Assembly: GCA_965202585.1 (NCBI GenBank)
Contig: OZ241828.1
Location: 38,130,001-38,194,000, forward strand
DNA length: 64,000 nucleotides
Source of the DNA: Thalia democratica
Lineage: Eukaryota
Direction: 5' to 3'
The notes below the pieces were generated by a model that ran no database searches, had not been told where the DNA came from, and worked only from the letters and a program-made list of their open reading frames with translations. This document shows positions 16,301-62,735 of this stretch, piece by piece. The position numbers and the translations under genes were made by a program. Within the stretch, counting starts at the first letter, position 1, and each line of letters begins with the position of its first letter.

Positions 16301-19300
16301 ATCTAATTTATTGTCTGGAATTTTCAGTACAAATGTTTAAACTCATATCATGATAAGAAAAAGTTACCGCACGTAAAAATTTACACACGACTTTTTGTTA
16401 AAATGCCTGCTTAAAACTTCCTACTTTTTCGCATCGCCTTTAATTGGAAAACAACCGGATAGTTTAGTGTATTCAGGCGTCAATTAAAAGCACACCATGC
16501 GTTCATTGTTCCTCGAACCGACATGGATTAAAACGCAAAACTTTTCGTACGCAATTCACACGCGTCCACCGTGAAGCTAACAAAACAGAAATCAAAACAA
16601 ACGAACGCTCCCGACAATAAGTTGAAAAACGCTAATGCCAACGAGCAGTTGAAAAAACACACGAACCTTTCTATCAGCTGCCTCATGCAAACCAGATCCG
16701 CCTCCACCCTGCTGTAGTGCGTGTATATGAGCTCGACGGCGTCCGAAGCCACGAACACGTTGGGGAGGCACCGGACGATCGTGGCGACGTCGCCCTTGAA
16801 CTTTTGGGGCGATTTTCTGTCGACGTGAACGCAGTAGATGTTGTTCGGTCGGTAGATGGCGCGAAGGAGAAGCTCGAACTGTCTCACCTTCCTATTGGTT
16901 GTTTGCAATTAGTAGAATATTTTATGCACTTTGAAAGGTGCAGGAAATGAATTAGACAATACAAATACTCTTATTAGTAACTTTGTAACCTAAAATTTAT
17001 TCAAACAAAAACAAAACTAAATAATACTTTCTATGATATTTGCTCATCGTAAATTTAAACGAGCTACGAAGTTATCTCAGAAACAAACTTGTGAATGGTT
17101 ATAATGTACGCAATTGGAAATTTTATTTCTTCTTCGCTCAGGGGTATATTTATGTAGTTTCTCCATTTCCGAAAATCTTCACAATTAGAAGCTCTGTTTA
17201 ACAATTCTTCTTCAAAGTTGTCAAATTTTAAACGCTTCGGTTTGTATGCCTGCAAGTTGTAAGGGTATAGATTTTTTTTCCGTAATGGTAGTACTAGCTG
17301 TTTATTTTTTTTTTAATTTATTTAATTTGTAAAACTTACTCGCATTTTGCTAGTATTAGTTTTGTATTTTTCATTTTATTTTGTTTTTTGTAAAAACAAA
17401 TTTTAATTTTATATAAGCTATAGTTTATTAACGACCAAAAAAAAGACGCTAAAGACATTTGGTCCTAGGACCTGGTGAACAAAAAACCTTTCGGTTATCG
17501 AGTCACACACCACGAATACCTTTTTACGTCTTGTCCAAGACCTATTTAATATGTTAAACAAAATTTATATTTGTGAACCTAAAGTGTAATTTACAAATTT
17601 ATTTTTTTTTCACTACAGTAGTAATAAACCATTAAATAAATACTAAAGTTTAGCAAAACAATTTTTTTTCTAGTTAAGATTGCTGTAACAAATTAAAAAC
17701 ATATTTATTATAAACAACAACCATTATAAATCATTCGTTAGCTTTTATTGCTTTTACTGTTCAGCGCACATCCGCGGTACTTCTACAATTAGATTAATAC
17801 GCAACCACTTAGAAAAATAACTAATTAAAGTTTTTGCATGAAACTTTAAACTATTTTACTTTTTAAAAAGCGCATTTAAATCTTTACCGAAGTAGTTTTT
17901 GCTAATGTTAATTGGCGCCGTTAATTAATTTGATTTTGCTTCCTAGAAAAGATTAAAGCATTTTACACAGGAACTAAAACGAAAATAGAAAGTATATCTA
18001 AATTTAAATAATCTCTTATCTATTTTAGTTCATAGCTAAATACTCTAGATTCTAAGGAAAACCAAATCTCGGATTGGTTCCTCTTTTTAACAATGTTAAT
18101 AAGATAAGCAAAAAACAACACTTTCAATACAAGTATTATTGAACAAAAATAAACTTTTTGTTTAAAGTTTTATTTTTATTTATAAGGTTTGTGTTTATAT
18201 TTGTGGTTATAATAAAAGAAGTAATAAGCATAACTAATATATACCTTTGAAGATTTATTAACCTTGACAAACTATTTACAACTTCGCGAAGTTAAATTTA
18301 AAACCTATGCTGAACAAAACGACTGAATAATTGAAACAAGAAGGATGTAAAGTTAACTTTAAATATTTTTTTGTGTACTATACAGTTTTAGATGAGATTT
18401 AATTGTTTGTTTTAACTAAGGACAATAATTTTTATTACAGTTGAATTGTGGTTTTTCATTGTCATATGATTAAAATAGCTTTGTATGATGTTTAAATAAG
18501 AAAGAAAAAAAAAATAGATGTTCTAAAAAATACCTGATTTATTAATTGAAAACTAAAATTAAAAAACATATGTTCTTTACACACTTACTAATAATAAAAG
18601 AATATAAACTTGTATAGAGAAAAACATTATTCATTTTTCAGACTTTTTTATTTTGTTTATTAATATTCAAATAAAACTTTCATGTGTTTCATACAAAGTT
18701 TTGTAACAGTGGTGGGGAATAAAATAAAACATATTAAGTTAAAAAAGGTTAGTTTTCTATAAAAATATGTATGTAGAATACGTAGAAAAGTTACCAAATT
18801 AAAAGTTAAAGACAAAAGCTTTACATACAAAAATTTTTAGATAAAAATTTTACTAAAAACTCAGAAGTAGCAGAAAATAAGAAAAAAGTCATACTTGGGA
18901 GTTGAACTCCATAAGCAAAAGTTTAGATTGCAAAACAGAATCTTCATTTTTCGATATAAAGCTCTCGCAATCGATGTTGGGTATCCCGTCTGGCCTGTGG
19001 TGGAACACTTGTGACATGCGGGCACGAACTTTTTCATTCTGCAAAGAAAAAATATCAAGCTCCTTATTATAAAACTTATTAGAGTTATTTAAAAAATCGG
19101 ATATAAGTACAAAGCTTAAGAAGTTGCAAATTTTTGTGATTATTAAAATATTAATAAATTAATATATTAAAATAATTGAGAACTTGTGTAAAATGTTAAA
19201 TTAGTTAAATAAAGAAAAAGTTACTAACCTAAAGTATCTAAGAATCTAAAGTAAAGATACATTAAAATAAACATCGACATGTATTAATAGGAAAATCTAA

Positions 19301-42175: not shown

Positions 42176-43756
42176 ACTTACTATATTGTTTGTTTTCTTA
42201 TAATGCATTTAATAAAATACAATTTCCCAATTTATTTCTTTACAAAAATAGTTTTCATTAAAGTTGTTCATAAACTAAAATAAAAATAAACAATGTATAT
42301 GTGTTAATAATTTAGTTTTTTTACTTTGTTCATTGGCAAATTAAAATTAAATTTGACTTGCATGGTATTAGAGAAAAATCTTAAAATGTGTTCAACCTTA
42401 GGTGGGCAAGGAACAAATTAGCTTAAAATAAGAGATTAAATGAGTTGAAATGAAACTTTATGTCATACATATTGTGAGTAATTGAAATCTTTTAAGGTTG
42501 CATTTTTTGTATCCAATGCAGCTTACAATAGTTATCCGAAAATCGAAAAAAGCCCTATAAAAACTTTTTTGAATCAGCTAAAATTTTATCACAAGTTATT
42601 CTTAATATTTGCTAAACGAAAACTAGTTTTCTAGTTGAAAACTCAGTATTTGAATGTTTTACAAGCGCCTTAGTTCAACAAGACCTGTTCAGTCTTAAAC
42701 AAACTTGAAAAAAAAGATTGAATAACTATTAAAAAGTGTTTTTGTCTCATATTTAGCCATGTATAAGTTGATCAATAGTGTAAAAATTTTCAAAATTTGA
42801 AAACTACTTATTACGAAAAAGAACTTTTTTCCTGAAACTTACAGCAAGCTGAAAACTATATTTGTAAGTAGGCTTTAAACTTTTAACTTAAAGTAAGCTG
42901 AAAACGAAAAATTGTGAATTATCATCTAAATTTCAGTTATCTTTAATAGTAATAATTTAAGAATGTATCAGAAGTTAGTCTTTACAATTTTATTTATTAG
43001 AGCTTTACCTGAAAAGCTTTTTTCCAAGAAACGCCACATCTTTTTTTCCTTCGGATTTTCGTTGTTTTCTTAAATTTGCTCTAAACATATTTTAGTATAT
43101 AATTAGAAGTCATGTAAACAAGGTTTGTACTTTTTCATGCATTTTAATAGTCGTGCAAAAGCTTGTCTTTACCTGTGGTCAGTTTTCAAAAAGTAATAAA
43201 ATCAAATAAATCATAAAAAAAAACTCAATTTTTAACTCTAATGTCTTGTTTAAACCCTTGTTAGCCTTTTATTTAGTTTAATAGTCTAGAATGAAAAAAA
43301 GTATAATTATTTTTTTATATCTTTTAAGTAAATTTTTATAAACACAAGCTTACAACTAGAATAGATTGTCTTATAAACTTACAATTTAGATTAAAAAGAA
43401 GCTCTTATTAAATAGTTTTCAAAAATACTTTAAGTATATCAATTAAAAATTCCAATCGAGATTATAGTAATTTTATATATTTTATATAGTAAACTACAGG
43501 CTATTTTATAATATTATAGTGCACTTTAAATGCACATTCTAGCAGTAAAATCAACTCGTTTTTTACTTGACTTCAAAAAATAGACATATAGTAAGAGTAA
43601 TTTAAAATTCTAAAAATAATTTAAAATTTTATCCGTTTGGTGACAGTAGAGGTTTGAATCATATTTCATCATTATGTAACACTGAAATTCGACTATCTCC
43701 AAAAATTAGAAAGTTTTAGTTTGAAAAATAAATATTTTATCACGCAAAATTCTTTA

Positions 43757-43863
43757 TCTAAATTGTAAAACGATGTACAACTAGAAATAAATATTCTATT
43801 TTAATTATTTAGTCACACAAAATTCCATTTCTAAATTGTAAAAGGATGTACAACGAGAAATAA
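43757..43863. repeat. 34-bp direct duplication
   Basis: tctaaattgtaaaacgatgtacaactagaaataa (43757) versus tctaaattgtaaaaggatgtacaacgagaaataa (43830). Confidence 0.8.
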
Positions 43864-44525
43864 CTATTTTTATGTTTTAAAATAGTAAAATATTTGATCA
43901 AATTTACAAGTAAAATAACAAACTAAATATTATATTTTGTGGTGAAACAGTGTATCAATAAATTTATACATAATAAATTATTTTGTGTTTATTTCATAAT
44001 TAAAGCACTATAAAATAATAGTATGTTAATAAAAACTTTAAGCTAAAAAGTTTACAAAGTTTTTAGTCAATCACTATATTAGTAAAAAAATCTATTAAAA
44101 ACTTAAATAAGTATATTAATACTTATGTTTATTTGTTTTTTACTACCCAGTCTTAATTATAAAGAAGTGCAAAAGTATATGTTATTCAAAAAAAAATTAA
44201 GTTTTCTATTTTAAATTACAAGAAGTTAAAAATTTAACATTGAGAAAAATATAAATTTAAGTTTATAAATGTCTCAGTTTACAAAATTATAATAGACTGT
44301 TTAGTTTAAAAATAATTATTAAAAAATTGAGTAAAAAATACTTGTATTTAGCTCTTTATTCTTATGCTGATGTGATAAAATTCTAAAAACTTTTGTGTTA
44401 TACGGTAATACAATGTCTAAGATGTAGTTTTGATAAATTAAAATCAAACTAATGCAATTTTTACTAAACGTATGGGTAAAAAAAGCTTGACCTGTTAAAA
44501 ATTTCTTAGGCACAAACTTAAAGGC

Positions 44526-45260
44526 TTATGTAACAACGAGTTCAAACCCTCTACTGACACTTGACGGATAAAAACTTTTGGAAAAACATTTACAAGTTAC
44601 ATAACTCAATTTATTAAAACGCTAAAAGTATTCTTTATTTTAGACTTAAAGGACGTACAAATAGAAACAATTATTTTTGAGGTTTTAAAATAGTGAAACA
44701 CTCAATCAAATCTACAAGTAAGATAACTAACCTTATAAAACATGTTTTCAGTTTCAGAACTTTTGACAACCTCAGACACAACTTAGATTGAGTTGTTTTC
44801 CTGCATTAAAAAAAACACATAATTAAGATTATCAGTATTAAACTTAAATTCATACAAAAACTGAGTTTAAAGCAGTTAAAAGATTAGAAAACGCTTCATT
44901 TTGATAAATCTTATCTGTGTTGTTTAGTTAAAAATGTATTTTTTTGAATTATTACAGATAACTTTAACACAGTCTTTCAATAGTTATTATTAAACTCTTA
45001 TTTCTATATACATTTCTATTTAAAACACCGACACCTATAAAATAACCCAATTAAATTTAGTCGTACAAATTTTAGAAACTAACCGTCATTTATAATAGTT
45101 ACGTAAAGTAAAATTAATTTTTATAAGGTTAAAGCAAAAATTCCATTGCAAAACAGCACTGTACGTCGAATCTTATGTAAAGCAACTTGTATTTGAGAGT
45201 TTACGTAATGATTGCTTACTGAGGTAACTTTTCTCGTTTTTTCAAAAAGCCTTTATGTAA
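44526..45260. promoter_or_regulatory. Cluster of six D-box (NFIL3/PAR bZIP, TTAYGTAA) sites
   Basis: TTATGTAA 44526, GTTACATAAC 44596, TTACGTAA 45099, TTATGTAA 45173, TTACGTAA 45201, TTATGTAA 45253. Confidence 0.55.
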
Positions 45261-46164
45261 GCTGTTTTTTTCAATCAAGTTTTTCTTTTATTAAAACTTC
45301 ATGTATAGTTTAAGTGAAAGCAAAACTTTAGGAAAAGTATCATAAGTATTGGTAAAATAAATTTTTATTCGACTAAATTAATTTCTGTTACAATGACTCC
45401 ATTTAAACTTTTAGCTTAAATCATATTAGTTTTATGTTTTGTTAAAATCAAATAATCTATAAAAAAAATTAACTTTAAAACATTATAACAAAGTTTGAAT
45501 AAAATGTAAATAAATACACTAACTTGATCTCATAAAAATTGTTGAGTTTATCCATAGAGTTTTTTCCAGTAGTCCTTCATGTTATCTGAAAATTTTTAAA
45601 TGTAAATTTTATTTTTAAAACTAAAATTTAAATATAGATTAAGTTAAAAAATTAAGATAACAAATGATAACTAACAAGTTACACTTAGCTTTGTATTTGA
45701 TTCAACATAAAATCAATGCACACTTTAAATTTGCTATAAAAACAAGAAAGTATAAATAGTTGTTCCATTGAAATAGATCTGATAATTAAGGCTTTAGCTA
45801 CAACTTTAAACCTTTAGCTAGTTATTTATACTATCATGGTTAAAAAACGTATTTTTTAGAATATATAAAGAATTGACCATATAGTTTAAAATTCTATTCA
45901 TAAAAAACTTTTTCATTTTCTTCATTCATGTAATTTTCTTAACATCAATATTTAATTTAAACTTTGAAAATAACGTATTGTTATTATATAAAATGTAAAA
46001 GCGAGTATAAATAGTTGTATTTAAAAAAAAGAAGTTGTAGTGAAAAATTATATAGTTTAGCTAAAATCAAAATTATACATTTTAAATTAACAAAATACTA
46101 GTACAACTTATTAAAATTTTGTTACTGTTTTACTTTTGAAACAAAATAAATACTTTTTAAATTC

Positions 46165-46314
46165 TTTCAAGATATCTCAAAGTTTCGGTCAAAGACCTCT
46201 TCAGTGCTGATTTTAAAAATCTTATTGAAGTAGAATCTATTTGAATAAGGTTTTTTAAACAAGCATTGGAAAGGTCTTTGACCGAAACTGAGTCTGCTTT
46301 AAAATATCTTGAAA
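46165..46314. repeat. 150-bp imperfect palindrome (foldback MITE-like)
   Basis: Perfect 18-bp pair agtttcggtcaaagacct (46181-46198) / aggtctttgaccgaaact (46272-46289), outer pair tttcaagatat/atatcttgaaa, and inner near-matches. Confidence 0.75.
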
Positions 46315-49293
46315 TAATTTAACAAATATAATTTCTCCTCTAGAAGTTTAGAACTTTTTATTAGTTTTCGAAAAATAAGTCATATAACAAAATAAATACG
46401 TTAAACAGTACAAAAATTTCTAAAAGTAAGAGGTTGATTTTAGCTTAAAGTGTAATTAAAAGTACATTTTTTTAATTAATACATTTCACCCTATTTAAAC
46501 TAATAAAAAATGCTTAGAAGTTTTAAACTAAAAAAAAGTTTTCATTTATTATTTCCTAATAACTGAAATAAAAACATCTAATTAAAAGAAGAGTAAGTTC
46601 TTGTTTTATTAAAACTAAATAAGTAGTTTTTGCTTAGTAACATTTTAAGATATTCATAGAAAATAAAACACTTTGCAGTGATGTTATTGCCTGTTTTAAA
46701 CGTTTTAAGTAATTAAAAAAAAAGCGATATTCGGTCTACTGCGTTTTTTATAACGGTTTGTTTTTCAACTAATACAACTAGTTAGATTTTCAGTTTTTCA
46801 CTACTGGAAAAAAAATATCTAACAGCTTAAAGTTTACTTAAACTTAAACACAAAGACTCATCTAGTTTTATCTATATAACATGCATCAAATTAGTGTAGA
46901 TATATGAAAGAAACTAATTTTTTTTTTCTTGTTTGTAAGCCAGATTATTATTGTTCGCTAAAGTTTTTAAATTATTATCTAGTAAAACATTACAAAATTG
47001 TGTTTAAAAAATTTATTGACATAAAGTTTAATTATTATGTTCGCTTTAATAACATAAAAAACTGCCACTGAAATTATTTGTTTGAATTTTGTTCAATTAG
47101 CAACTTTTTTTATTATAGTATATCATAATTTATTTTGGTTTTTGTTAAGTTAATTAAAAGTTAATTGTTACATCTGTTAAACTGCTTTTTATATTAGAAG
47201 TTTTACATTCTAACTTAAAAAAAAGTTAAACCTTAAACTAAACTTCAAGTATTTAATAAAAAAAACTTTTAAACAAAAAGTTTAGTAAACCATATAAACT
47301 GAGTGACTTTTTACATGGTCTTTGGAAAAGATAAACAACAACACCACACTACTCAACACTTTAAGTATCAACGCAGTTGTTAAAAGTAAAACTACATAAG
47401 TCATTGTAAGTTTTACGCGTTTAAGTTTAAAGAAAAGTCAGGTAACGAGCTTCAAGGGAACTATTTATCTCTGTTGAAAACTAAAAGCTTCAAGAAGGCA
47501 ATGTGTCTTGTAAGACTTCAGCTCAAGTTAGCTTGCCGCAACTGTTTATGCATGAGCATTTGAAAATGCCGGTATGAATTATCTACACGGTTGACTGAAC
47601 ACACATGCAATGCGGGCATACACTTGCTCACGCTTTATATAAACTTAGTGTTATATTAAATTAAAGAAACGCAGTTCTTTAACTAGAGAGTAAAGTATTG
47701 AACATACCTCGGCGTTTGTGACCAAGCTTGAGGCTACCCAAAATTTAAAAATAAACTAAGTTAATAAAGATGGCTTTAAAACTAAGCTTGTTTTAACAAC
47801 AAATTTTATTACAAATATTATTACAAAATTATCAGTTCTTAAAAACCTACTTGAAAAAAGTCTTGATTATATACGGGTTGGTTTCCTTGTTTTCTTTCAT
47901 AAATACAAACACCTGTTTATTTTTTTTGTGTAAAAAAATAAAATTATTTTACACACAAAACCCTTAAAACTTATTTCTGTATATAGGCTCTTTAAAGAGC
48001 AGAAGCCAATAAAAGAGCCTAAAAGTCTTAACTTAAACTAGAATAACATTATATACTTCAATCAAGTAAGGCTATTAAAAACTAAAATATAATTTGATAA
48101 AAATCTTTTTTAATACTTTAATCTAAAGCGTAAAAGCAAAACATCTAAATTAGCTACATGCAAAACATAGTAATTAAGGCACTAAAAACGAACCTGACAC
48201 TATTCGCTCCACTAAAACTTTGTCTTTTTTGGTTGAAAGCTTATTTTAGTACCCTCTCATCTTCACAAATTACACACGGCTCAGTATCTCCTTTATTCTA
48301 GTATTTTCTTCATTCTAGTAACCTTGGTCACCTGCTAAACTACTAAACTCCACTTTCTCAAGTTTTTTTTTATTACGGTATTAAGGTTTAGCAAGCCCAG
48401 ACTGCAATGTTTTGTTTTTAAATACCCCTTAACTTAATCTTTTTCTTAGTTTAGCGTTTTAAATGTTTACTCTTATTCATTTTTCTAAACAACTGAGCTT
48501 TTCCCAATTCTAAATAGTTTTGCATCGTTTTAAATTCTTAAAAATGGCAAGTCTGGGCCGCTTTACCTGTTTTCAATATTGAATTAATTATCAACATCAA
48601 TTTTCTGTTTTGTTCCTAACACTTTTTAAGTTTACAGTTTTAGTACAGCTTTAAAGCATAACGTGACTTTATAATACTTTAAAAGCAAAACAAGTTACAA
48701 CAGTTTTTATAGTTTTAATTATTAACATTAATACTAGTTTAAAATACTTTAAAGGGAATATTAATAAAGTGCAAGTGTTAGGAAAACAAAATAGTAATGT
48801 AAATATTTTATGATTAAAAGTTAGTCTTTCCACATTGTATTTGTATTTTTGAACTAAAAATTTAATTTATATTTACAAACTTCAATAAACAGCAAATTAT
48901 GGTCTAATCAATTAAATGGTTTCTTTATAGTTTTTTTTCATTTTGATAAAATTAAAAAGCTGCTTGATAAAAATAAAAATTTATTTAAACGGCAAAAGTT
49001 AGACTGTGGAAACACTAACTTGATAGATTAATTACAAAGTGCTTATAAATGCGTAGCGTACCTCTCCTAATTCTTTTTCTTCAGGTGACACAGAGATTTA
49101 TAAATTTTAAAACAAAAAAATCCTTATAATTATTTTCGGACATCTCTACTCTTAATCGAAACTATCTTGCTTTCTCACCTAAGGTTCTTTACATTAAACC
49201 ATTTAATCTTTGCATTTAACTACGCTTAAAAATTACCTCGTCTGTTAAGTTTATACAAAAAACTCTTTTACCACATTAAAAAGTTTTATTCGA

Positions 49294-49363
49294 CAGGCGT
49301 CCGTTTCCTATGCTTGGGAAAACCTCAAAAAAGGTAATCCCAAAAGAAGAAACGGACGCGCTG
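49294..49363 (-). ncRNA. Candidate pre-miRNA-like hairpin
   Basis: GCGTCCGTTTC (49297-49307) pairs with GAAACGGACGC (49349-49359). Inner helices are TTGGGA/TCCCAA and ACCT/AGGT with a 6-nt loop. The minus-strand fold gains G-U pairs. Confidence 0.35.
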
Positions 49364-50212
49364 CCATTAGCTGGTGACGATAAGAAATTTACGACGGAAA
49401 GCGAACATCAACTACGAAGATAAAAATAAGTAAAAAAGAAAAAAAATATATGTACACGGCCCTACACTATTCCTTTCCACCTTCTCTCCTAACTTTTATG
49501 GTTTAAAAAAAAAACTTAATTAAATTTTGCCAATTAAATGGTCACCTAAAGAATGTAACGAGAGCTACGTTTTAACAGTTAGATTATTCACCGCTATTAA
49601 AACCAAGTTAAAGTTATTTTTCTGCGTCGTTTTTACAACGGGCAAGCAATAACTGTTGTGTCACTTGCAAAATAAAAATAAAAACAACAAAGTCATTAAT
49701 ACTAATTATGTAAAAGTTAAGTTTGTTTGTATGATATACACACATAGTTTTGATTCTCAGTTACAAATCCATTAGTTTTTACTCTGCCTCTTTCCATGGG
49801 AACTTTTTAGATCAAAGCAACAAGTGAAGTTTCGTGTTCTTTGGAATCTAACCGGTTTTGGACGAGCCAAGCACCTCTGGTCAGATCCAAAGCTGTCCAC
49901 TTTATTTTTTACTTATTCAAAAACGTCGATAGCATCTAAAAAGACAGAAAAACATCCGATAGAACTTCGCTTGGTCGGCCATGGTGAGCCTAGCTCTTCT
50001 GTTTTTTTAGTTGCGATCATTGTGTGAGGGTTGGGGAGGCGACAAGGCAAAGTTAAAACTAACCGAGCGATCGTAGAGATCTATACAACGAAGTAGTTTT
50101 AAAATCACAGCTAACAGGTGTAACAACAACACAAAAGCATGAACTGTATATAAGTAAATGTTTTATCGAACAACAACAATTATCACTTACCGATCATATT
50201 TTTACAACTTAC

Positions 50213-50353
50213 ACTCCGGCCATCCTGAGAGATGCTTGCTCTGAGCTCCGCGAGAGTGTTGATAGACTCGTTCTGTCACCGTTTTCTGAAAACTTCCCCT
50301 GCGAAGCGACACCGGGCAACATTTTAATAGGGAAGTTCTCGGGCTCGAAAAGT
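50213..50353 (-). other. Orphan 141-nt exon downstream of NFIL3
   Basis: Long pyrimidine tract ending ctctccag and a GTAAGT donor. The block is GC-rich with an open phase 2-2 frame (LFEPENFPIKMLPGVASQGKFSENGDRTSLSTLSRSSEQASLRMAG). Confidence 0.5.
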
Positions 50354-51958
50354 CTGGAGAGAAGGAAGGAAAAGGGACAGTGGTCGAAGGGACAGAAAAA
50401 AAAACACATATACAATGTAGATAAAGTACTAAAGATCAAATAACAACCCTCGCGCAAGTTGGAAAAGACAACACAAATACACACAAACACGACACACACA
50501 CTTATTCATGTAATATTAACTAATTGAAAAGTATGTCCCAATTTATGGATTATGTGACAGTAATAACTTTCGACACATATCAAAAGGTACAACGAAAAAA
50601 GTAAAAAAAAACAAGTACAACGATACTAAAGTTACGTAATAAGAAAAATAAAGTAGTAACGTAACATTTTATATTAAAATTTGAACGATTTTACGTTAAG
50701 CAGTTTTTTTTAAATTTTTTTATGTTTATGAAACATAGTTAATTAGAAATTATTATAAAAAATATTTTTATCTGTATTTTACTTTTGTAACTTCAAAGTG
50801 AAAAATATTTAAGCTTGTCTTCTTTTTTTATCAACGAAAAACGACTATATACAAAAAATCCCTCTGCAGTATAACTATCAAGTTACCAATTACAAATCTT
50901 TCGATCATATTAAAAACTTACTTCATTTAAACTTACAACTCAAAAAAGGCATCCTCGCAAAACAACACATTCTTATCATTAGTCTCGTAAGCATACCAAT
51001 ACCTTTCTATACGAAATTAAAGCGAAAATAAAACAAAATGAACAACATGTCTCTTAGCCCTGGTCGTAGCAAAGTATGGAAAGAAACAATCAGTAGTTGT
51101 TGGCTTAACCGTAAAAAGTAAGAATATGTACAAGGGGCTAGAGATTAAGTTACTCTAGCTGAAATCAGTTTTAGAAAACAACAAAAATACAAAATAAAAG
51201 CGTTAAAATACTTGAACATGTTCATAAGTTCTTTTTTACTTACAAAATACTTTAAGCACAAAGGGTCAGAGTTTTTACCCAAAAAAAATTTTACTCACAC
51301 GCGCACACACCATGCTCACAAATATTCAAACACGCTCATTTAAAAATTTAGACCGACCAAATGTAGTTTTTATGAATTTTTTAGTGTTTGTTTGACTGTA
51401 CATGTGTGGTTTAATGTCTGCTCTTATTCCGCAGTGTTAGTGTGTGTGCATGTGTATCTGTGTTGCTCCGAGCTAACTGAATAAGCTTTGAACTTTTACT
51501 AAAAAAGTTTTTTTAAAAGTAAAGTTTTGAAAATAAGTCAGCTTTTTCAGCTAGCTCGGTTGGACCAAACCCTTCATCGTCAAACTTAGTAAAAAAAAAC
51601 ACTAAATTGTTTTATCATGCAGATATATATACAAAAAAAGCAAGAATTGGTGTTAAAAGGGCCATGAGATGAATGGATTGCCAACGGATTTCTGTATTGT
51701 TGTTGTTGTTCACACGGGTGTTCAAGGCTTTTGTTAACTTATAAAGTAATCGGCTATTTTGAATCTATTGTCTAAGGAATGTGCACGAACCAACTGGAAA
51801 CTGCGTGGTTCGTGGTGTTTTTTCAAATTCATACGCAAAGAGAGTATTGGTTCAAAATAAACGATCTTTTCAACAACAAACAAAAAGTCACCAATAATAA
51901 TAAATTTTAGCAGAGTCCCTGTACAAAACACTTGGTGTGTGACCCGTGTCGCCGGGCG

Positions 51959-54900
51959 TTAGCCCGTTTTTCCGTCCTTCCACCTGAGCTTGTGCGGAAG
52001 GCTCTTGTTCGCGCCGTTTTTGTCCACGGAGCTGTTGCTGGCGCTGCCCGGCGACTGCGGCAGCGGCTCCGAGTGGCACGACAGCGACCTCTTCTGGCCG
52101 CTCCCGTTCACCTTGCCGTTCTTCCCGCTTATGACGTAACTGCTGTCGTCGATGCTCATCGGAGCGCTCCTCCGCTGCTGCTGGAGGTGCTGGATGGCGC
52201 TGATCCGCTGCTGCTGGACGGTCAGCTGCTGCGGCGACTTCTGCTGCTGGACAATGTGAATCTGCTGCTGCTGGTGGTTGGCGACGACGGCGGCAATCTG
52301 CGCGGTGGTCATGCTGAGCTGCTGCTGGATGTTGGGGGAGGGCGGCGTGGAGGGAATCGAGTGTTCCATGGAGCAGGATGAGTGGGTGGATCCGCTCCTC
52401 TTGAGCAGGTTGGCGAGCGTGTTGGCCGCCTCCATCGCCTTCTCGTCGGTCGTGCATACTTCTCCTGAAAAAATTTTGACATACAAGAAAGACCGTTTAG
52501 TTTCTTAAAGTTTAGTTAACAAAAATATTCATACAACAACTTTTTGTGTAAAATGTTTTTAAACTTCAAACACAGTTTGTTACAACAAAAACGCACCTTG
52601 CTGCTTCTGAACTTGCTGCTGATGCTTCTGGAACCCGTTGGTGTCGATCTGCGTTGAGCAGATTGGAATCCTGAGCGGCACCACCACCTGCTGGTCGTTC
52701 TGCAGTCGCAAGTTGTTGGACGCGCCCTTGATGGCTGCCGGCAAGCAGGCCATGTCCTCCGTGCCTGGCTTCAGCGAAGTCAGCACGTATGCCCCGGATG
52801 CGAGGTTTTGTAGTAGCTCCTGGAACAACTAATTGTTAGCTCTAGCACTTTTTGTTATTCTTTTTTTTAATTGTTCAAATTTTTCGCAAATTACTTGTTT
52901 CCAAATTCTTTTTAAATAAGCAATTAACCTTACGCATAAAAGCTTACTCAAAGAAACCAGGGTAAAAAAAAGTGCATTTATTTAGTTTCAACCTTTAGGA
53001 CGAGACCAACCTGCGTGTAGTTGGACGAAGAATTGGACTGGGAGGATCCGGGCCCGTTGACGTTGCCGTTCTTGTTTCCGTTGGTGGCAATTTTGGAGGT
53101 GAAGGCGTGCAGGGTGTCCGAGGCCGTAGCCTCCAGACCGCCCAGGCCCAGGTTCTGGTGGTGGCTGAGGAGCTTGTGCTTGCCCGTGTCGTTCTCCTTG
53201 CTCAGCTGGGAGTTGATCGTTTCGAGCAGAGACTGTCGCAGACCGATTCTTTTCTCGTCGCTCTCTGTTGTGAGACAAAGAAAAAGTAACCGACCGTGGC
53301 ATGCTGAGTTCTTATGTTTACAGTTTAGTTTACTTGAGAACTAATGGAATTTTCAAGCTTAATATAAGTCATTTATAGTCATATTATGAAGTTAAACTTT
53401 TTTTCAGTTTTTTAAATTTTAAAATATGAATATTTTTTGAAACAAATACTATAAAACTACTCAATTAATAGTTTAACGATCACTGTGAAACTTAAAGCAA
53501 AGCTAAGTATTGTAAAAACTTATAACGAGTTAAGTTTGTTTCATTTTCAAACTATCAATTTGTTTTAATTTTCATTTACGTGAATAATTTTTTTCATTGT
53601 TTATCCTTAATTTTTTGTTTGAAGTTATTTTAGTAAAACTAGATATGCCTGCTAAAATATTTGATGACTTGAATTAACTAAAACAGCTGTATATAATTTT
53701 AAATAAACGCAGTAACATTTTTAAAAAGTAAAAGAAAAAGTATTAAAAATTTTCTTTCTAACATTAAAATTTTCAATACACCTAGTACACTTGTTGGTTG
53801 TTTTTTAAATCGAAACCTGCATAAGTTTAAACTTGTAAATGGTTTCGCACTACGAACTAAGGTCTGTTAAACAAAAATGAAACAGTTTTATTGGTCGTTG
53901 CAAAGGCTTGCTTCACTACAAGCACAATGGAATGCGGTTCGACGTAATGTTTGCAGTTTAAGCAGATAAAAGTTACCAGATTAGAAACCATTTGTAAATC
54001 ACAAGTTTTGATAAACTATTTTGCACAAAAGATTTGGTGGTCACTTTTAGAAAAAGGTTAGTTTTTACCTAAAATTGTTGCTTAATCTAGTATATCAGTC
54101 ATTAAAATTAAAAAGTTTTTAAATGCTTTTTTAATGCATTAGTCAAAAGTTTAATAAATAGTATAAATACTATGGTCCTACATAACAACTGCAATAAAGT
54201 AGATTTTCCAAAAACGCTTTACATAATCATACAACTAATTAAAAAAAAAATCAGTGCATTCCTAGAAAGACCTTTCGAGTAGCATAAACAGTTTTTGGTT
54301 GTTAAAAATGTTAAGTAAATATTTCAAATAAACAAACTTGCAAGCGCTTGTGATATGAGTTTGTTGGTGAGTGCAATTGAATTTCCCGTCTTTTTCAAGT
54401 TTCCTGATGAATCAATGATCGAATCAGTTGTTGAAGATGATGAAGACTGTTTACACAAAGAATAATTGCTAAGTAAAATACAACAACTAGTCTTACGTAA
54501 AATATTTTTTGTTTAGTATAACAATCGTTAAACTAATTAAATTTGAAAAAGGATAGCTATAATAGTTACAATTATTCAAAGCTTTTTAGTGTAGTGAACA
54601 AATAGTTTTTACTATTTTATATGTTACAAATACTTTATTTTAGCGCATAAGATATTAAATTTTGCTTCAAAACTAAAAAAAACAAATGATATATAGTTTA
54701 CATTTATTGTATTAAGCTTCTAATTACAATATTTTTTCAATTGCTTTTTCATTTTGTTTAAATAAATTTTTGTACTACATATTAAAAAAATGAAGTTTTG
54801 CATTTAACTATTTTTCTATATTTCAAAACATTCCCCGAATTGCTATAAAAAACAAACACTTGTCTTAGACACACAACTACGTCAGTTTAATACGTTTAAT

Positions 54901-57900
54901 ATTAGTCTTTCAACTTAGATGTAGTTTATAATTACCAAGTTGTTTTAATTAAATTTTAGCATCATTAAAAATTAATTTTCCATGAACCAACATAAAAAGA
55001 GAAACAGTAGTGTATAAAATAAAAGTTTCTCTAAGATCATAACCTCCATCGATACACTGATTTTGAACACCTTTAAATTCAATGGTTTCACAAAATTCGG
55101 ACTAGTTTATATGAATGCCCCAAAATTTGTTTAAAGCTATCAACTTTTTTAAAGGCATTTATTACAACAACATGATAAGAACGTTATAAAGAAGTCTGTA
55201 TTGTCGAAAAAGTGCAAGTGAAGTCTTTTTGTTTTACTTTAAAATATAATCCTGTTGCTTGGTTGCTCTTGTAGAAAGAAAAGTATGAATGATCTTGAAG
55301 ATCGAAATCTAATAGAAAAAATAATGTGTTGCTCATGGTAGGTTAACTGTGATTTTTAAGGTTAGTATTGACAACAATTGGTTTTAAAAGAGTGATTACT
55401 GTATTTAGTTATTAAAGTTCACCTTGTTTGTTGTTGAACTTTCGTAAAGCTTAAAAGAGTTGATATAAGTTAATAGAGTGTTACTCAATGACTATGAGGT
55501 CTAGCTGTGAGTGTTCTCATCAATTTTTATTAAAAAAAAACTCTAGGTATTTAAAATCAATGTTAGAACTTAAATTATGTTCTAATATACAGATATACTT
55601 AATTGTTCAAGGCTTACACAAAACGGATCACAAAATAACACAAGAATTCCAATTCAGTAGATCAACTCTCATTAAAGCTATTAATCTTCACATAGTTTAA
55701 GTTAAAAAAAGTTATTTCGTTTTTAATTATCAACTACTTTGAGGCTTATTTTATCTTTAAGCTCTTTGAAAGAATGTTCCTTAAATTCTGTTTTAAAGAT
55801 GACAGAACAATCTTTAAGTTACTTCATACAGCTTAGATTTTATTATTAATTTTTGGATAAGGGTCTGCCTGAATTTAGTTGTGTGAAACCGGTTTTTGTT
55901 TTATACCCTAATTTAAAGGTATAATAATATGCACACTTATTTTTTTACTTAAATAAAACACTATACTATAATGCAAATCTCTATTGCAGCTAAATATACT
56001 TTTTATTTTTTTCTACTTAACTAGTTTAAAACTATGTAGGTTAGAAAAAAAAAATACATTGAAATAGCTTTTTTTTGTTGTTTATAAAAAAAAACTAGTT
56101 TGTAAAGCTGAACTTTATAGGACAAAATTCAAAATGTATTGTAATTTTTAGTATAAACTTAGTTTGAAAAGTATAAGATTGATCGGTAAAAAAAACCCAT
56201 ATAAATAACACTTTCAATGTCAAGTACCTATTTATCAACCTGGTTTTTTATGCAGGCAAGCAAAAATTTTGCTAAATATTATACCTTCTGCCATGGTACT
56301 TCAATATACAATCAAGTAAGTTAGCAAAGCACTCTTACAACTTTGCAACCGAAGCAAGCACGTCACGCAAAAAGAACAGAACACAGAGTGAAGATGAGAC
56401 GTGAGTTTTGCATTTTGTCATTTCCACCAATAAGCAGAATGAACTAATATTTAATAATTTAAGATTATAGTAAACATCCTGTATTCAACGTGAATTATAC
56501 GTTGAATACAGGATGTTTATAATAATAATAATTACACAGAAAAAGAGATATACCTAAAAAAATAATGAAGTTTTTACTAAAAACCTGTTTGTTTGTTTTT
56601 TTAGGTTTTCACTTAAAAAACCAAAGAGTAATGAAAACTACTACTCAGAATTTGAAAACAATGGGAATGATGATAATTGCAGTTATCAGTTTGGAGACAC
56701 AATTCTAGATTTTGTTTATAAGATGAGGCTAAATAACACTTATATAAAACTGCAATTAAAATGCTAAGTAGCAGCTTATGAATTTCATTTCTATTAAATA
56801 TAAAAAACAAGTGTTTAGTAGGAATTTGTCGCAAGAAAAAAATTAAAAAATGTTTTAAAAAAGTTAATTACTTTAAGCTAGCTATAGAGTACAGTTTTTT
56901 TAACAACAATTTTACTTACTTAAAGTCATGCAACAGTACTTTTTGTGTAAAAAAACCTAAAAACGTTTAATTTATCAAATAAAAATTTACTTTATTAAAG
57001 AATACTTAAATTAAACTGGGTTTTGCGTAATTTAGATCTACAGCAAATACACAAGATTCAAGTTTTAAACGGCAGACAGCAAATATTAAAAGCAGTGATG
57101 CGCAGCGACTTGAACTCATTTCAACTGTTAACTTCACTTCAGTCTAGCCAATTGAAAAGCAAACAGAAAGGCACAAGCTTTTCAAATACACACTTCTTGC
57201 AGAAAACCCGCGCCTTAGCGCAATTTTTAACTAGTGGTATAACTTATACAAATTTATCAAAATTTTGCAACGCCACTTGTTTGTTTTCTATGCTTTTTCA
57301 CAAATTTAATTTAAATTGATAACCGTATTTTCACGTTTTTAACAGCTTGCTAAAACTTTTGTTTTTGAATACTAATTTATACATTGATATTTACGTACAT
57401 TGTTTGATATTTATGTACATTGACAGAGTTAATATGAAACTACGCTTTCGATATATATTTAGAACTTAAAAGTAAAATAATATTCCAAAACAAAATCATG
57501 AATAAATAATCTTGTATATTTGTCTTCTTATTTTTAAATAAGTTGAGAACTTTTTTAGTTCAATTTAGAACCTCAAATATAAATTTTGTCAAAACTCTCA
57601 AAATTTTTCAAGTTTTGAGAGTTGAACTGTAAAAATTTTTCAAGTTTTTATTTAAAATATTTTTAAATGTTTGTGCAAACTTAGTGTGTCTTATATTTTT
57701 TAATGATTTTTTTAGTGACCTAACGATCCTTAATTTTTTTTGCTTAATTTCACGTACATTTTGATTTATGTTTTGATATACTATTATAACAAACAAACTG
57801 ATGAGCTGTTCTGTCTAACAGAGCAGTGATACAATTGTATTTGTAAAAACGTAGTTTGTCTTAATACATACATATTTCTTTATAGAAAGTTCATATATAA

Positions 57901-60900
57901 TTAGTACATGATTTTTTTACAAATAAGTAGCTTATTCTAAGCTTTTTCAATTTTAACATCATAAAAAACTGTATTCTAATAACAAGAAACAAATCAGTAA
58001 CTTTAATTGTTAGTTAAAAAACAAGATTTTTTATTTCTTTTTATTAATTTTACAAATCAACTTTTACATTTTAGTCTACTAAAGGAACTTTTTTTTCAAA
58101 AAAATAGTTTTTGTTAATTATAAAATAGTGGGTGTAATTACAACTTCTAGATATTTGTTTTAAGTGAAATTAGTCATTTTAAACAAGCAGTAATACCAAT
58201 GAGTTGTTAAAGACGCTATTAGTTAGTTATACAACTTTTCTATCATTTCAAATATTTTATGACAGAGCAGTCTTCTATGCACATGTGCCATAAACTTTAT
58301 AGGAAATTAAAAACATTTTAAAAATAGGCATGAATTATGTGAGGTTCTAAAACAATTTATACTATTTCGTTGGTACTAAAAAATTCAAAAACTATTTATA
58401 ATGCATAACATAAAGAATAAACAACACAAAAAGAAAGTATTTTGATAGTTCAAAGAATCAACACATTTCAACTGGGTTTATGTTGGTACAATAAAGGAAG
58501 ATTACTGTATAATTTGTTTTTATTTATATTCCAGTGAACTTGTTTCACTAGGATCTTTTGTTAGCAAACGATTAAATATATACTTTGAACAGTTAGATAA
58601 TTCAAAAAACTATTTATGGTTAAGTGAGCATATATTTTCTAATAGTATACTATTTTCACAACTAACAGCTAATTCAAGAACAACTGTGCTGCTAGATTAT
58701 TGTGTTAAATTGAAATATTAATAAAAATGTTTTAAATAAAACTAGTCAATTACCTGATCTCCATTTTCGCTTGTTGGTGGTATCAATCCGTACTTTACCT
58801 AAAATAAAGTAAAGTTAAGTTGCAGCTTGTTTAAAATAAATTGATTTATTTTTAATCATTTAAGTACTTAACTGTATTTTACAATATGAATATACTTGAC
58901 TTATTTGTCAATTGTTTAGATGTATCAATAGTATATAGTTATTAATAATAGTACATAGTTTGTATCAACTAAAAATAATGCTCAATTTGTTGTAAAATAA
59001 ATAGCATAATTGATAAACAATAAAAGTGGGAATTAACTATTCTGTTTGTTACCTGGTTTCGGTGGGAAAAAATTCCGACCTTGATAGATGTATCAATAGT
59101 AGTTTAATCTTTAAGATGTATCAATAGTAAAATTATTAATACTTTTAAATGAACAAAAAAATAAAATTTTGTCCAAGAACCTGGTTGTAGTAAAAAAAGC
59201 CTTTCAATTATTGAGTCGTAAACCACTTGAATGCAGTTTACCGCTTACTAAATTAATTTAAAGTTTAGTTTTTGAAAACTATTTGTAGCATCTAATCAGC
59301 AGTTACTCAAAATATTTTTGAGAACGATGGACAAACTTAAAAAGAAAACTTATAGGTTTCAAAAGTCAACCACTTGTAATGAATAATTATTGGTTATTTT
59401 TTGTAAAAGTACGACGCCTAAAACTAGTTAAATACATATATAAGTTAATTTTAATAGCATCACATTCTTTTTCATAATAAAAAAGAAAATCATTGTTTAT
59501 AAGAAAATATTTTCTTGACAATTTAATTTAAGCTAGGCAATAAACATTGACCTTTAGTACGTTTAAGTTATAACATCGGTTATTGTAAATAAAAAAAAAA
59601 TCAATTTTTTCTTAAGAAAACTTAAACAATACTTAGTTTCAAAAAATGAGTTTATAATTTTTGGCTAAACAAATATAAAGCGCGAAAAATAAGGTAAAAA
59701 GTATAAACTTTCATAAAGCACCTGAGTTGAAGAAATTTAAACAAAAAGTTTAGCAGAACTACGGTGAAAGTACTTTTATTTTATTTGCCAACTTTGTAAT
59801 AGACTACATACTACGTGGTTGTACGGAAAAACAACCGAGAAAAAAGTCAGCAGAGTGCGTTACGCAACGGGCGAGTAGCAGCAACTGGTTCTTACTGAAC
59901 GAGTCTGGTTTTCATCGCCGCCGCCATGTCAGATGGTTCAGAGCTTTACGCAATTTCAAAAAGTTAAAAGACATAAGTAACTACAAAAAACAAAAAACTT
60001 TTAAGCTTAAAGAAGAACTTTTCAAACTCTACAGATTGTTGTAATAAAATCAACTTGAAACAATAGTATACTTGGTCAGATATTTTGATTTTTTTTAAAC
60101 ATGTTTGGAATAATATTCGAAATAAAAAAAGACTACAAATTTAAAAAAAGTCTTTTTGGTCTTATTGTATTTATTTGTAAAAACATTATTTACCTTAAGA
60201 GCATACAACTCTTGTCTTAGTTGTTGATTTTCATGAAGTAAGATCAAAACTTTTTCTTCCAAAACTGAGTCAATTGTTCTTCGTTTTTGTCGAGATCTGT
60301 ATAGAAAATAGTTAGGTAAAGCATAAAAAAAAAGTTTAAGTTTAATTTTTATTTAAAAATTTTTTCCCGAATTTATTTATCTTATGTAACGCAAACTTTA
60401 CAGCAAAATATGTAAAGCAATTTTTTTTTTTTTTTTGGCCATTACAAAACGTGTTAACATATCGATTGATTCGGTATACGAGGCTTGAAAACAGTAAATA
60501 TACTCAACGTGGTTACAATTCATGCAAGACTAATAAAAAAATAAGTGCCTGTGTTGGTTGAAATACTGTTTATTCGCGTGTGTATGAATTATTCAAAACG
60601 CAGTAGTCGGGCACTCAATCAAAATACTATCTGCAAATGAATAAAATCGAGAGAAGATGGGCGAAGAGAAAAAGCAACTTTCAAAACGGTTACATAACAG
60701 ACGGAGATAACAGGCCAACCTCAGTTGTAGTTTAACACGAATGCCATAACAATAAGTTCTATAACGATATTTAGTGTTACGCTCATACAACACTTCTCCA
60801 AGCGAATTATTTCATTCGAACAAATTAAAACAACAGTTAGTTTAAGTTTTGCTTTAAACTAAGTAGTTTAATTTGGTTATATAAGATCTTAAAAAGTATA

Positions 60901-62735
60901 ACTTATAAAGTGTTTTCCATAAACTAAAAAACAATAATTACATAATTACTTTTCCAAGAAATTAAGTTTATAAAAAGATAGAATCCCACATGCCAATAAA
61001 TAAATTACAAATTAGTAATTAAAGATTTTTAAAGCTTAACTGTACAAAATTGAAACTTTTCCTTAATTTTAATCAAATACTTACTAAAAAAACATAAAAA
61101 TCTTATTATTTAAAAAAACTAAAGTCTTTAAAATGTAACAAAACGAAAGTTCAAGAGTTTTTTGTCACAAAAGAATTGTTATTAGATCATTAACTTATGA
61201 TGTTTTCATTTTTCAAGTCTTAGTTATTGAAAATTCTTAGCATTTTACTTGGATTAGGCCTACTTCTCTATAATTTTGAAAAACTATACTTTTATTCTAA
61301 GATGGTATACTGAACTGTATGTAAATTTAATCTTAAAACTTCAAGGTTTCCATTGTACAAATGATTTTAATCAAGCCACAGTGTTTGTCGATGAATTTTA
61401 AGTGACCTCAGAATTAGGTTCGTGTGACCTTTATTTTTTATTTTTGGCTGTTCTACGTATACAATTTTGCCTTAGTGTATTTTTATTATGTATAAACAAA
61501 ACACACTATAAAGAATTTTGAAAACATTATAAAATCAAATAAAAAAAAGATTATGTTATCTCTAAAGTTAAATGTGTTTTTTGTTTATTTCAATACTTAT
61601 TTAAAACTACATTTTTTGTTTAAAAACTTGCATATATGTGATAAAAAACTAAAAAAACCAATTATGCTTAATTATTTCAATGATACTGATCCCAATGAGC
61701 AAAGGAAAAATTTTTAAACATTTTAATTGAAAACGGTAGATTTATATGTAGTTAAAACCAGTTGTTTCAAAAAGTTGTACAGACGTTCAAAAAGTTCATG
61801 TGAACTAAATTGAAATCATTTCAAAACAATCTAAATAATTTAAAGAACGAAACGAACTTCCTTGCCGCTTCGTTGTTCTTCAATCTCTTGTGCCAATAGT
61901 ACTCATCTTTGCACTCGTTCGGTACAAAATGTCTGCTCTTACGCATAGTCGTCGGGCAACGTGGGTAGGGCTGCTGTTGGAGAAGTAAATTATGAAGAAG
62001 TGAATTGTAACAACGAGTTGGACAACTACACAACGTTGATGATATTAAGCAGTTATGTTTTTTTTTTTGTTTTCTAAAATAAGTTCACTCTTCTTAAGTA
62101 AACTTATCTGTGTTAGATTATTTTTCATGAGCAGTTTAAGACTAAGATTTTTTGAGATAAGTTTTCTACAGAAAAAGCATTAAAACTTTCTTTTTATATA
62201 ACAAACGTTAGAGTTGTATAAAAGTGTAGAATAAGAGAATTATATTTACTCCGATCTTCTACTTAGTTTTAATTTAAAAAATAGCAATTTTAGAGATATG
62301 CAAAAGCTTACAGATATTAAAAATACTTCATACTTATTTTGAAAATTAAAACTTCACGATTTTATATGTTTTTTATTTAATCTAAATTTTTTTTTCAAGT
62401 TAAAAAATCACTCATTTATAAAACAAATATCACTGAAAAACTGTAAGAAGTCAGGTACTTGTTGAAAAAAAGGCCTTAGCATATCAAGGAAACTTCTCGC
62501 AAACGTCAGATGCATTTCAAAAATAGAATCCTGTAAAAACAAACAACAAATATTAACTCACGAGGTTGCTCGACAGGATGTTTCCGATGTTGTAGTTGGC
62601 CGACCCGTTGAACCCGCTCTTGAGCACGTTGGTAGGGTTGGGAAAGTTGAACGATGGCTGCTGCTGCAAGTTGTGGTGCTGCGGTTGAAACTGGGTACCA
62701 TTTGACGCTAGCCCTCCGTTGAAGCTGGGGTTCAT
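51959..62735 (-). CDS. NFIL3: NFIL3/E4BP4/vrille-like bZIP transcriptional repressor, 512 aa
   Basis: Exons (minus) 62735-62562, 61973-61858, 60296-60194, 58798-58754, 54446-54338, 53264-53011, 52828-52597 and 52464-51959, total 1539 nt in phase. bZIP: RKSRHFVPNECKDEYYWHKRLKNNEAARKSRQKRRTIDSVLEEKVLILLHENQQLRQELYALKVKYGL. The C-terminal SLPHKLRWK matches the E4BP4/vrille LPHKLR repression motif. Confidence 0.93.
56471..56519. repeat. Perfect 21-bp inverted repeat with a 7-nt spacer
   Basis: taaacatcctgtattcaacgt-gaattat-acgttgaatacaggatgttta. Confidence 0.9.
59166..59227. repeat. Short interspersed repeat family copy (diverged)
   Basis: gaacctggttgtagtaaaaaaagcctttcaattattgagtcgtaaaccac. Confidence 0.55.
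59859..60946. promoter_or_regulatory. Intronic D-box/CEBP-like site cluster within NFIL3
   Basis: GTTACGCAAC 59859, TTACGCAA 59946, TTATGTAA 60382, GTTACATAAC 60689, ATTACATAAT 60937. Some sites sit in GC-richer non-coding islands. Confidence 0.45.

Follow-up and report, generated by a model that had tools for sequence, protein, structure and literature searches.

A D-box cluster in the spliced 3' extension of a tunicate NFIL3 gene: a candidate homotypic module for NFIL3/PAR-bZIP feedback

D-boxes are bound by NFIL3/E4BP4, which acts as a repressor, and by PAR-bZIP factors, which act as activators. In mouse liver, DBP and E4BP4 share D-box sites (PMC6687812). Among the preferred DBP/E4BP4 ChIP-seq sequences in mouse, TTATGTAA has rank 2 and is active in reporter assays, and the classical palindrome TTACGTAA has only rank 18; reporter effects are given for at least ten top-ranked D-box sequences (PMC6687812). 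The D-box enhancers of vertebrate clock and light-regulated genes (mouse Per1-3, Rev-erb, and Ror, zebrafish per2) share the core TTAYGTAA with the sites described here. As summarized in the literature cited, these enhancers carry several copies together in a promoter or an intron and are read by PAR-bZIP factors and NFIL3 (PMC6687812; Vatine 2009 as cited there).

Little is understood of the tunicate clockwork, and components of the canonical loop are reportedly absent. Ciona seems to be without CLK, CYC, and TIM (PMC9939569), and a Botryllus preprint describes the absence of per and cry from 15 tunicate genomes (bioRxiv 10.1101/2020.12.08.417055); this is roughly what a first-pass annotation of the DNA analyzed here had stated when it called Ciona a species reported to lack clear clock orthologues. 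The same annotation pointed to a dense group of D-boxes near an NFIL3 gene in the window, which is the whole 64-kb stretch of DNA that was analyzed.

The gene next to these D-boxes is a genuine, intact, and expressed NFIL3/E4BP4 orthologue. Its coding part is arranged as follows:

51959-62735, minus strand: coding part of the NFIL3/E4BP4 orthologue, eight exons with an intact frame of 509 amino acids
62735-62562, 61973-61858, 60296-60194, and 58798-58754, minus strand: coding exons 1-4, from a relative's mRNA mapped to the window
54446-54338, 53264-53011, 52819-52597, and 52464-51959, minus strand: coding exons 5-8, from the same mapping

The mRNA used for this map (contig L053) was found via the last exon, its protein P0001 being 89% identical, and all junctions of the eight exons are GT-AG. 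The bZIP domain is divided between exons 2 and 3: positions 1-17 of Pfam bZIP_2 lie in exon 2, and the strikingly A+T-rich exon 3 supplies the remainder, SRQKRRTIDSVLEEKVLILLHENQQLRQELYALK. The orthologous protein P0001 matches bZIP_2 at 6.6e-13. The domain has the extended basic region of the PAR and NFIL3 subfamilies, and this region, KDEYYWHKRLKNNEAARKSRQKRR (NNEAARKSR with the extension KDEYYW), closely agrees with the solved NFIL3 bZIP stretch. The top PDB matches are the NFIL3 chains 8k86/8k89 with an E-value of 8e-19 over 67 residues, compared with 3e-5 for CREB and 2e-3 for C/EBP; the domain is nearer to NFIL3 than to CREB, C/EBP, or other bZIPs, and the first-pass identification of the gene as NFIL3 is thereby upheld. 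The closest named homologues come from Ciona intestinalis, Clavelina lepadiformis, and Phallusia (a protein that is NFIL3-like in UniRef). They are all ascidian, and the host is accordingly a pelagic tunicate, in agreement with the earlier proviso that it might be a tunicate. Still closer homologues are nameless and stem from marine metatranscriptomes. A C-terminal motif LPHKLR[FW]K is common to the window gene and its ascidian orthologues. The gene is called expressed because marine metatranscriptome contigs span its 3' UTR and poly(A) site.

Base composition differs strongly between the exons of this gene. Exon 3 (60194-60296, minus strand) lies in an open-frame stretch, 60098-60352, with a GC content of 0.24, and the large 3' coding exons have 56-62% GC, resulting in an exon-by-exon GC mosaic within one gene. 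Exons 1, 2, and 4-8 are 72-93% identical to relatives' mRNAs, and exon 3 is 96% identical in a close and 91% in a distant relative. In the GC-rich exons between 51959 and 53264 (minus strand), a second same-strand frame and one opposite-strand frame are open over 150-190 codons. These overlapping frames are misleading, and a frameshift appears if exon 3 is overlooked: a model joining exon 2 straight to the exon at 53.2 kb was rejected because it passes over two small exons as well as exon 3, which is A+T-rich. Intron 3 contains a GC-rich island of 122 bp (59812-59933, 51% GC) without a notable open frame, a match to relatives' mRNAs, or an Rfam match. Rfam and tRNA scans of the 64-kb window were empty.

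Evidence from RNA, which consists of contigs of two marine metatranscriptome runs aligned to 44450-50449, places the D-boxes inside a transcribed region. The relevant features are:

49266-51958, minus strand: long 3' UTR of NFIL3, with AATAAA at 49290-49285 and D-box cores at 50632 and 49706
43008-49138, minus strand: spliced extension beyond the main poly(A) site, from RNA contigs
about 49138-48194, 47912-47851, 45585-45524, 44800-44732, and a next exon from 43080, minus strand: extension exons with GT..AG borders

The main poly(A) site lies at about 49266, as shown by a contig with a non-templated poly(A) end 20 nt past AATAAA. RNA contigs also span 48192-49138, and contigs join 48194 to 47912, 47851 to 45585, and 44732 to 43080. 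Translation of the four joined extension exons (49138-44732) yields no long open reading frame across them. In a more distant relative, the last NFIL3 exon runs unbroken in a 6-kb contig (L061) to the donor at window position 48194; splicing then uses the acceptor seen in the window, and the contig continues into sequence that corresponds to 39.26-39.48 kb of the window. The cluster therefore sits in two introns (44801-45523 and 43081-44731) of a spliced 3' extension of the NFIL3 unit; the stop codon is 6.7 kb away and the main poly(A) site 4.0 kb. Its earlier placement 7 kb downstream of NFIL3 is thereby corrected: this is not plain intergenic DNA, since the sites are intronic in the extension. 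Owing to this intronic position, the cluster could affect NFIL3 or any part of the unit farther downstream. The extension itself may be a further isoform of NFIL3, part of a polycistron, or a gene that overlaps NFIL3.

Several observations concern sequence farther downstream. The exon 43008-43080 (minus strand), spliced from 44732, reads ATG TGG CGT TTC TTG GAA AAA AGC... and has GTAAAG as the donor behind it; a coding gene inside the NFIL3 extension may begin here. A 9.6-kb metatranscriptome contig of a relative (L058) carries the NFIL3 coding sequence at 208-1722 and, 6 kb on and on the same strand, an ADH_N/Glu_dehyd_C open reading frame, and represents an operon-like polycistron unless the assembly is chimeric. 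The next recognizable same-strand coding gene downstream in the window consists of exons for a GT14 'Branch'-type glycosyltransferase (IYCVHVDRKS...) at 13333-16908 (minus strand). A protein-guided mRNA search for this downstream GT14-like gene gave no match, and neither did an exact search of JGI metagenome and metatranscriptome contigs with the exon at 47.9 kb.

A scan of the window sequence found six TTAYGTAA cores in 44526-45260, four of them in 45099-45260:

44526, plus strand: D-box core TTATGTAA, in intron 43081-44731
44597, minus strand: D-box core TTATGTAA, in intron 43081-44731, the sole fit to RTTAYGTAAY among the six (44596-44605)
45099: palindromic D-box core TTACGTAA, in intron 44801-45523
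45173, plus strand: D-box core TTATGTAA, in intron 44801-45523
45201: palindromic D-box core TTACGTAA, in intron 44801-45523
45253, plus strand: D-box core TTATGTAA, in intron 44801-45523
45099-45260: sub-cluster of four cores between the downstream exons 45524-45585 and 44732-44800
43672-43679, plus strand: further D-box core close by, the seventh, matching the full 10-mer, in intron 43081-44731

All six cores lie exactly where the first-pass annotation had put them, as exact matches to the 8-bp core within 735 bp, and inclusion of the core at 43672 gives seven in 1.59 kb. The full consensus RTTAYGTAAY is matched by one of the six cluster cores. Their flanking positions agree with it in 5 of 12 cases, which is the chance level, and a comparison of the flanks revealed nothing common to the six sites beyond the core. 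In the entire 64-kb window there are 24 distinct D-box sites: in addition to the six of the cluster and the one at 43672, nine fall in 1-43.6 kb and eight lie beyond the cluster. The six background sites that had been listed for the first 44 kb are all present, but the list was incomplete and missed those at 26242, 31217, and 37819.

Such a density is not expected from base composition. When the cluster was compared with composition-matched simulations of the window, as had been proposed at first pass, four sites in 162 bp occurred in none of 1000 Markov-1 and none of 1000 Markov-3 sequences, and six sites in 735 bp occurred in 1 of 1000 order-1 and 0 of 1000 order-3 simulations. As a second yardstick, word families of the form NNNYNNNN with similar abundance were held to both thresholds, four in 162 bp and six in 735 bp; 4 of 1074, TTAYGTAA included, reached them in the window (p about 0.004). 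The working figure for a pre-named motif clustering in this way is thus p about 0.001-0.004 per window.

The genome, in which the window occupies C4:38,130,001-38,194,000, is 801.8 Mb long and contains 21,892 copies of TTACGTAA and 166,678 of TTATGTAA/TTACATAA, corresponding to a core density of 0.235/kb, slightly below that of the reversed control words. At this density, a Poisson process yields, genome-wide, 0.2 six-core clusters (735 bp) and about 1.4-1.5 four-core clusters (162 bp), and at the density of 0.32/kb found in a local background sample of 200 kb it predicts 1.2 and 4.9, respectively. Real DNA is lumpier than Poisson. Genome-wide, 186 same-strand D-box triplets with gaps of up to 80 bp were counted against about 24 expected, and most of them are satellites or dispersed repeats. 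Since the reversed control word forms 192 such triplets, clustering of the D-box motif is not a general feature of this genome. Among 30 loci taken from these triplets on C1 and C2 (about 165 Mb), three are non-repeat loci with four cores in 162 bp, which suggests a genome-wide total of about 15, and no non-repeat locus has more than four cores in 735 bp. One locus of this kind (C1:1,064,775-1,064,899) is unique non-repeat sequence where four D-box cores, including two copies of TTACGTAA, fall within 125 bp, with TACGTAA nearby. The cluster is rare. Four-site loci are extrapolated to exceed the Poisson figure of 1.4-1.5, and the six-site arrangement has no counterpart among the sampled non-repeat loci. 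With regard to density, the sites exceed both composition and genome background, as in a homotypic-cluster module.

D-box cores are also found in other parts of the NFIL3 locus:

63235: D-box core TTACGTAA, some 300 bp upstream of the mRNA start as mapped
60938, 60690, and 60382: D-box cores in intron 2
54493: D-box core TTACGTAA, 47 bp before exon 5
54219: D-box core, 119 bp past exon 5

Between 43.6 and 63.3 kb there are 15 cores (0.76/kb), compared with 0.21/kb elsewhere in the window; with the genome rate as expectation the excess has P 1e-4, and with that of the local sample 0.002. After subtraction of the cluster, the excess at the locus is not significant (P 0.04-0.16, the latter against the 200-kb local sample). 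The palindrome TTACGTAA occurs five times in these 19.7 kb, about 9-fold its genome-wide density of 0.027/kb: as the pair in the cluster, in the 3' UTR, before exon 5, and upstream of the mRNA start. Over the 18.1-kb span of the five sites, its Poisson P is 1.6e-4, rising to 0.014 when the cluster pair is left out. Neither the other seven WWWCGWWW palindromes nor all WWWCGWWW words pooled are enriched at the locus, and the CpG observed/expected ratio is ordinary. The excess of TTACGTAA is therefore motif-specific, and CpG retention was rejected as its cause.

Genomic DNA of relatives was available from two ascidians and from organism B, and other relatives were represented by transcripts. The Ciona intestinalis orthologue has seven coding exons in 6 kb and six cores; a single intron has four of them within 820 bp, and another lies 116 bp behind the stop codon. 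The 25.9-kb Ciona locus has 11 cores compared with a Markov expectation of about 5, and by the word-family yardstick its clustering has an empirical p of 0.016-0.04, at positions other than those in the window gene. Two of the four intronic cores (AP043571.1, L056 13704-14515) have the common flank CCCACTTAYRTAAAAAA, which suggests a local duplication. The Clavelina orthologue has no D-box inside or just past the gene. The copy of the cluster region in organism B is about 98.7% identical, a divergence too small to inform on conservation; no core is altered among the displayed differences, 5 of 12 substitutions lying outside the display. An apparent 744-bp skip at 44859-45604 in this organism was discarded as a repeat artefact because one of its sides is 24 nt long. 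A relative's transcript with 72% identity lacks the two 3' UTR cores at the corresponding positions. The record from relatives thus amounts to one weak positive, Ciona, and one negative, Clavelina.

The NFIL3 protein of the window should read TTAYGTAA, as predicted from family knowledge because its basic region is close to that of the solved NFIL3 domain. The genome also has an NFIL3 paralogue on C7 (54.199 Mb) and a PAR-like match on C4 (48.838 Mb). On C2, arrays at 72.72-73.32, 98.93-99.03, and 61.75-61.89 Mb contain tens of exon pairs that resemble the NFIL3/PAR basic region and zipper, with about 55% and about 43% identity and a spacing of about 180 bp; these arrays look like a large lineage-specific expansion of an NFIL3/PAR-like bZIP subfamily. 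With the paralogue, the PAR-like match, and the arrays, competitors for D-box sites exist in this genome.

The reading preferred here, to which a probability of roughly one half is given, is that the cluster is a homotypic D-box module providing NFIL3/PAR-bZIP feedback on the NFIL3 transcription unit. The six cores, or seven with that at 43672, would act as one cis-regulatory module located in introns on the 3' side of the extended unit. The NFIL3 product would occupy the cluster in competition with related bZIP activators, and this occupancy would feed back on its own locus as negative autoregulation or cross-regulation. We infer that the cluster is bound, which way it acts, and which gene it controls. 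In favor of this feedback, the cluster lies inside the transcription unit of the very factor family that reads the motif.

The most substantial alternative, possible yet distinctly less probable, is a chance or neutral pile-up of an A+T-rich 8-mer without function, which happens to lie near NFIL3 in a genome with 75% A+T. Four-site non-repeat loci are extrapolated to be roughly ten times as frequent as under Poisson, the reversed control word clusters equally often, and three other word families cluster as strongly within the window itself. The flanks are without a consensus beyond the core, the 3' UTR sites are not positionally kept, Clavelina is negative, and the pairing of motif and gene was picked after the fact, which also counts against the feedback reading. 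Yet the pre-named 8-mer family reaches p about 0.004 against word families and at most 0.001 in simulations, no sampled non-repeat locus attains six cores in 735 bp, and two of the four cores in the sub-cluster are the genome-rare TTACGTAA, which alone is enriched among matched CpG palindromes; the weak parallel in Ciona points in the same direction. A pile-up derived from a mobile element or from a decayed tandem array whose unit bore the motif was rejected and is the least credible of all explanations. It might be suspected from weak local duplications with an 808-bp spacing, from the satellite nature of most dense D-box runs elsewhere in the genome, and from a high-copy inverted-repeat element 1 kb away (about 46.05-46.45 kb). 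However, the 1-kb cluster region is single-copy in 802 Mb save for a 48-bp chance match, no tandem period spans the sites, and the six sites are alike in the core alone. The cluster is thus unique sequence, as in a homotypic-cluster module; the first-pass statement that it is not part of a tandem repeat stands, and its membership of a repeat family, which would have spoken against the proposal, was not observed. The neighboring element contains a near-perfect 54-nt inverted repeat (46181-46234/46236-46289) within the segment of about 46050-46450, where the contig depth reaches about 48,000 in one DNA run; it is a very high-copy MITE-like element.

A real D-box module with another target, such as the exons from 43080 on or a neighboring gene, or with other readers, such as PAR-type activators or the products of the bZIP arrays, is unlikely. 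The sites are in introns of downstream exons and outside the NFIL3 coding gene, a further open reading frame follows the extension exons in a relative's contig, and the extension reaches about 39.3 kb in a relative; the paralogue on C7, the PAR-like match on C4, and the exon pairs on C2 would supply other readers. Against another target, the downstream exons are continuous with the last NFIL3 exon in a relative's transcript and hence share the NFIL3 promoter at least partly, and D-boxes are enriched also on the promoter side and in introns of NFIL3. Other readers as an alternative lose weight through the fact that NFIL3 and PAR factors share sites wherever tested (PMC6687812).

A self-repressing NFIL3 D-box loop, comprising promoter, introns, and 3' cluster, that serves as the negative limb of an oscillator or in light or stress resetting and replaces PER/CRY feedback is highly improbable; the idea of a D-box-only clock is speculative and draws on site counts. 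One photolyase/cryptochrome-family gene is present in the genome, on C10. The Pfam Period_C profile has no match in the genome and none in controls either, so that it has no bearing on PER.

If functional, the cluster would offer a compact element, of about 200 bp to 1.6 kb, for D-box feedback wiring in the closest invertebrate relatives of vertebrates, and electroporation of Ciona is a practical route to testing it. If non-functional, it is a calibration case: a cluster for which Poisson predicts fewer than one copy per genome and which is nevertheless matched by several neutral word pile-ups, given the lumpiness of real DNA.

Compared with the vertebrate D-box enhancers, the cluster differs in being located at a tunicate NFIL3 locus itself, 4 kb past the main poly(A) site, and in being known from its sequence; the flanks of its cores also differ from the vertebrate 10-mer. 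Mammalian Nfil3 belongs to the same gene family as the window gene and has the same DNA-binding domain. Its rhythm is said to have been ascribed to RORE elements by Ueda in 2005. The vrille/Pdp1 loop of Drosophila with its V/P boxes is similar in that repressor and activator bZIPs of one family compete for one type of site (PMC9939569). In Drosophila, however, the boxes are in Clk and vri is driven by E-boxes, whereas here the boxes are at the gene of the repressor itself, and CACGTG and RORE, like CRE, are absent from the 64 kb, an absence that is not significant for such short words. With autoregulated transcription factor genes that carry homotypic clusters, the locus shares many identical sites in less than 1 kb of unique non-coding DNA of its own unit, a likeness that is here purely statistical. 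Among the titles and opening parts of abstracts retrieved in a literature search, none reports NFIL3 autoregulation through D-boxes. D-box clusters as modules are well known, and the cluster at a tunicate NFIL3 gene itself is a new candidate example of them rather than a new kind.
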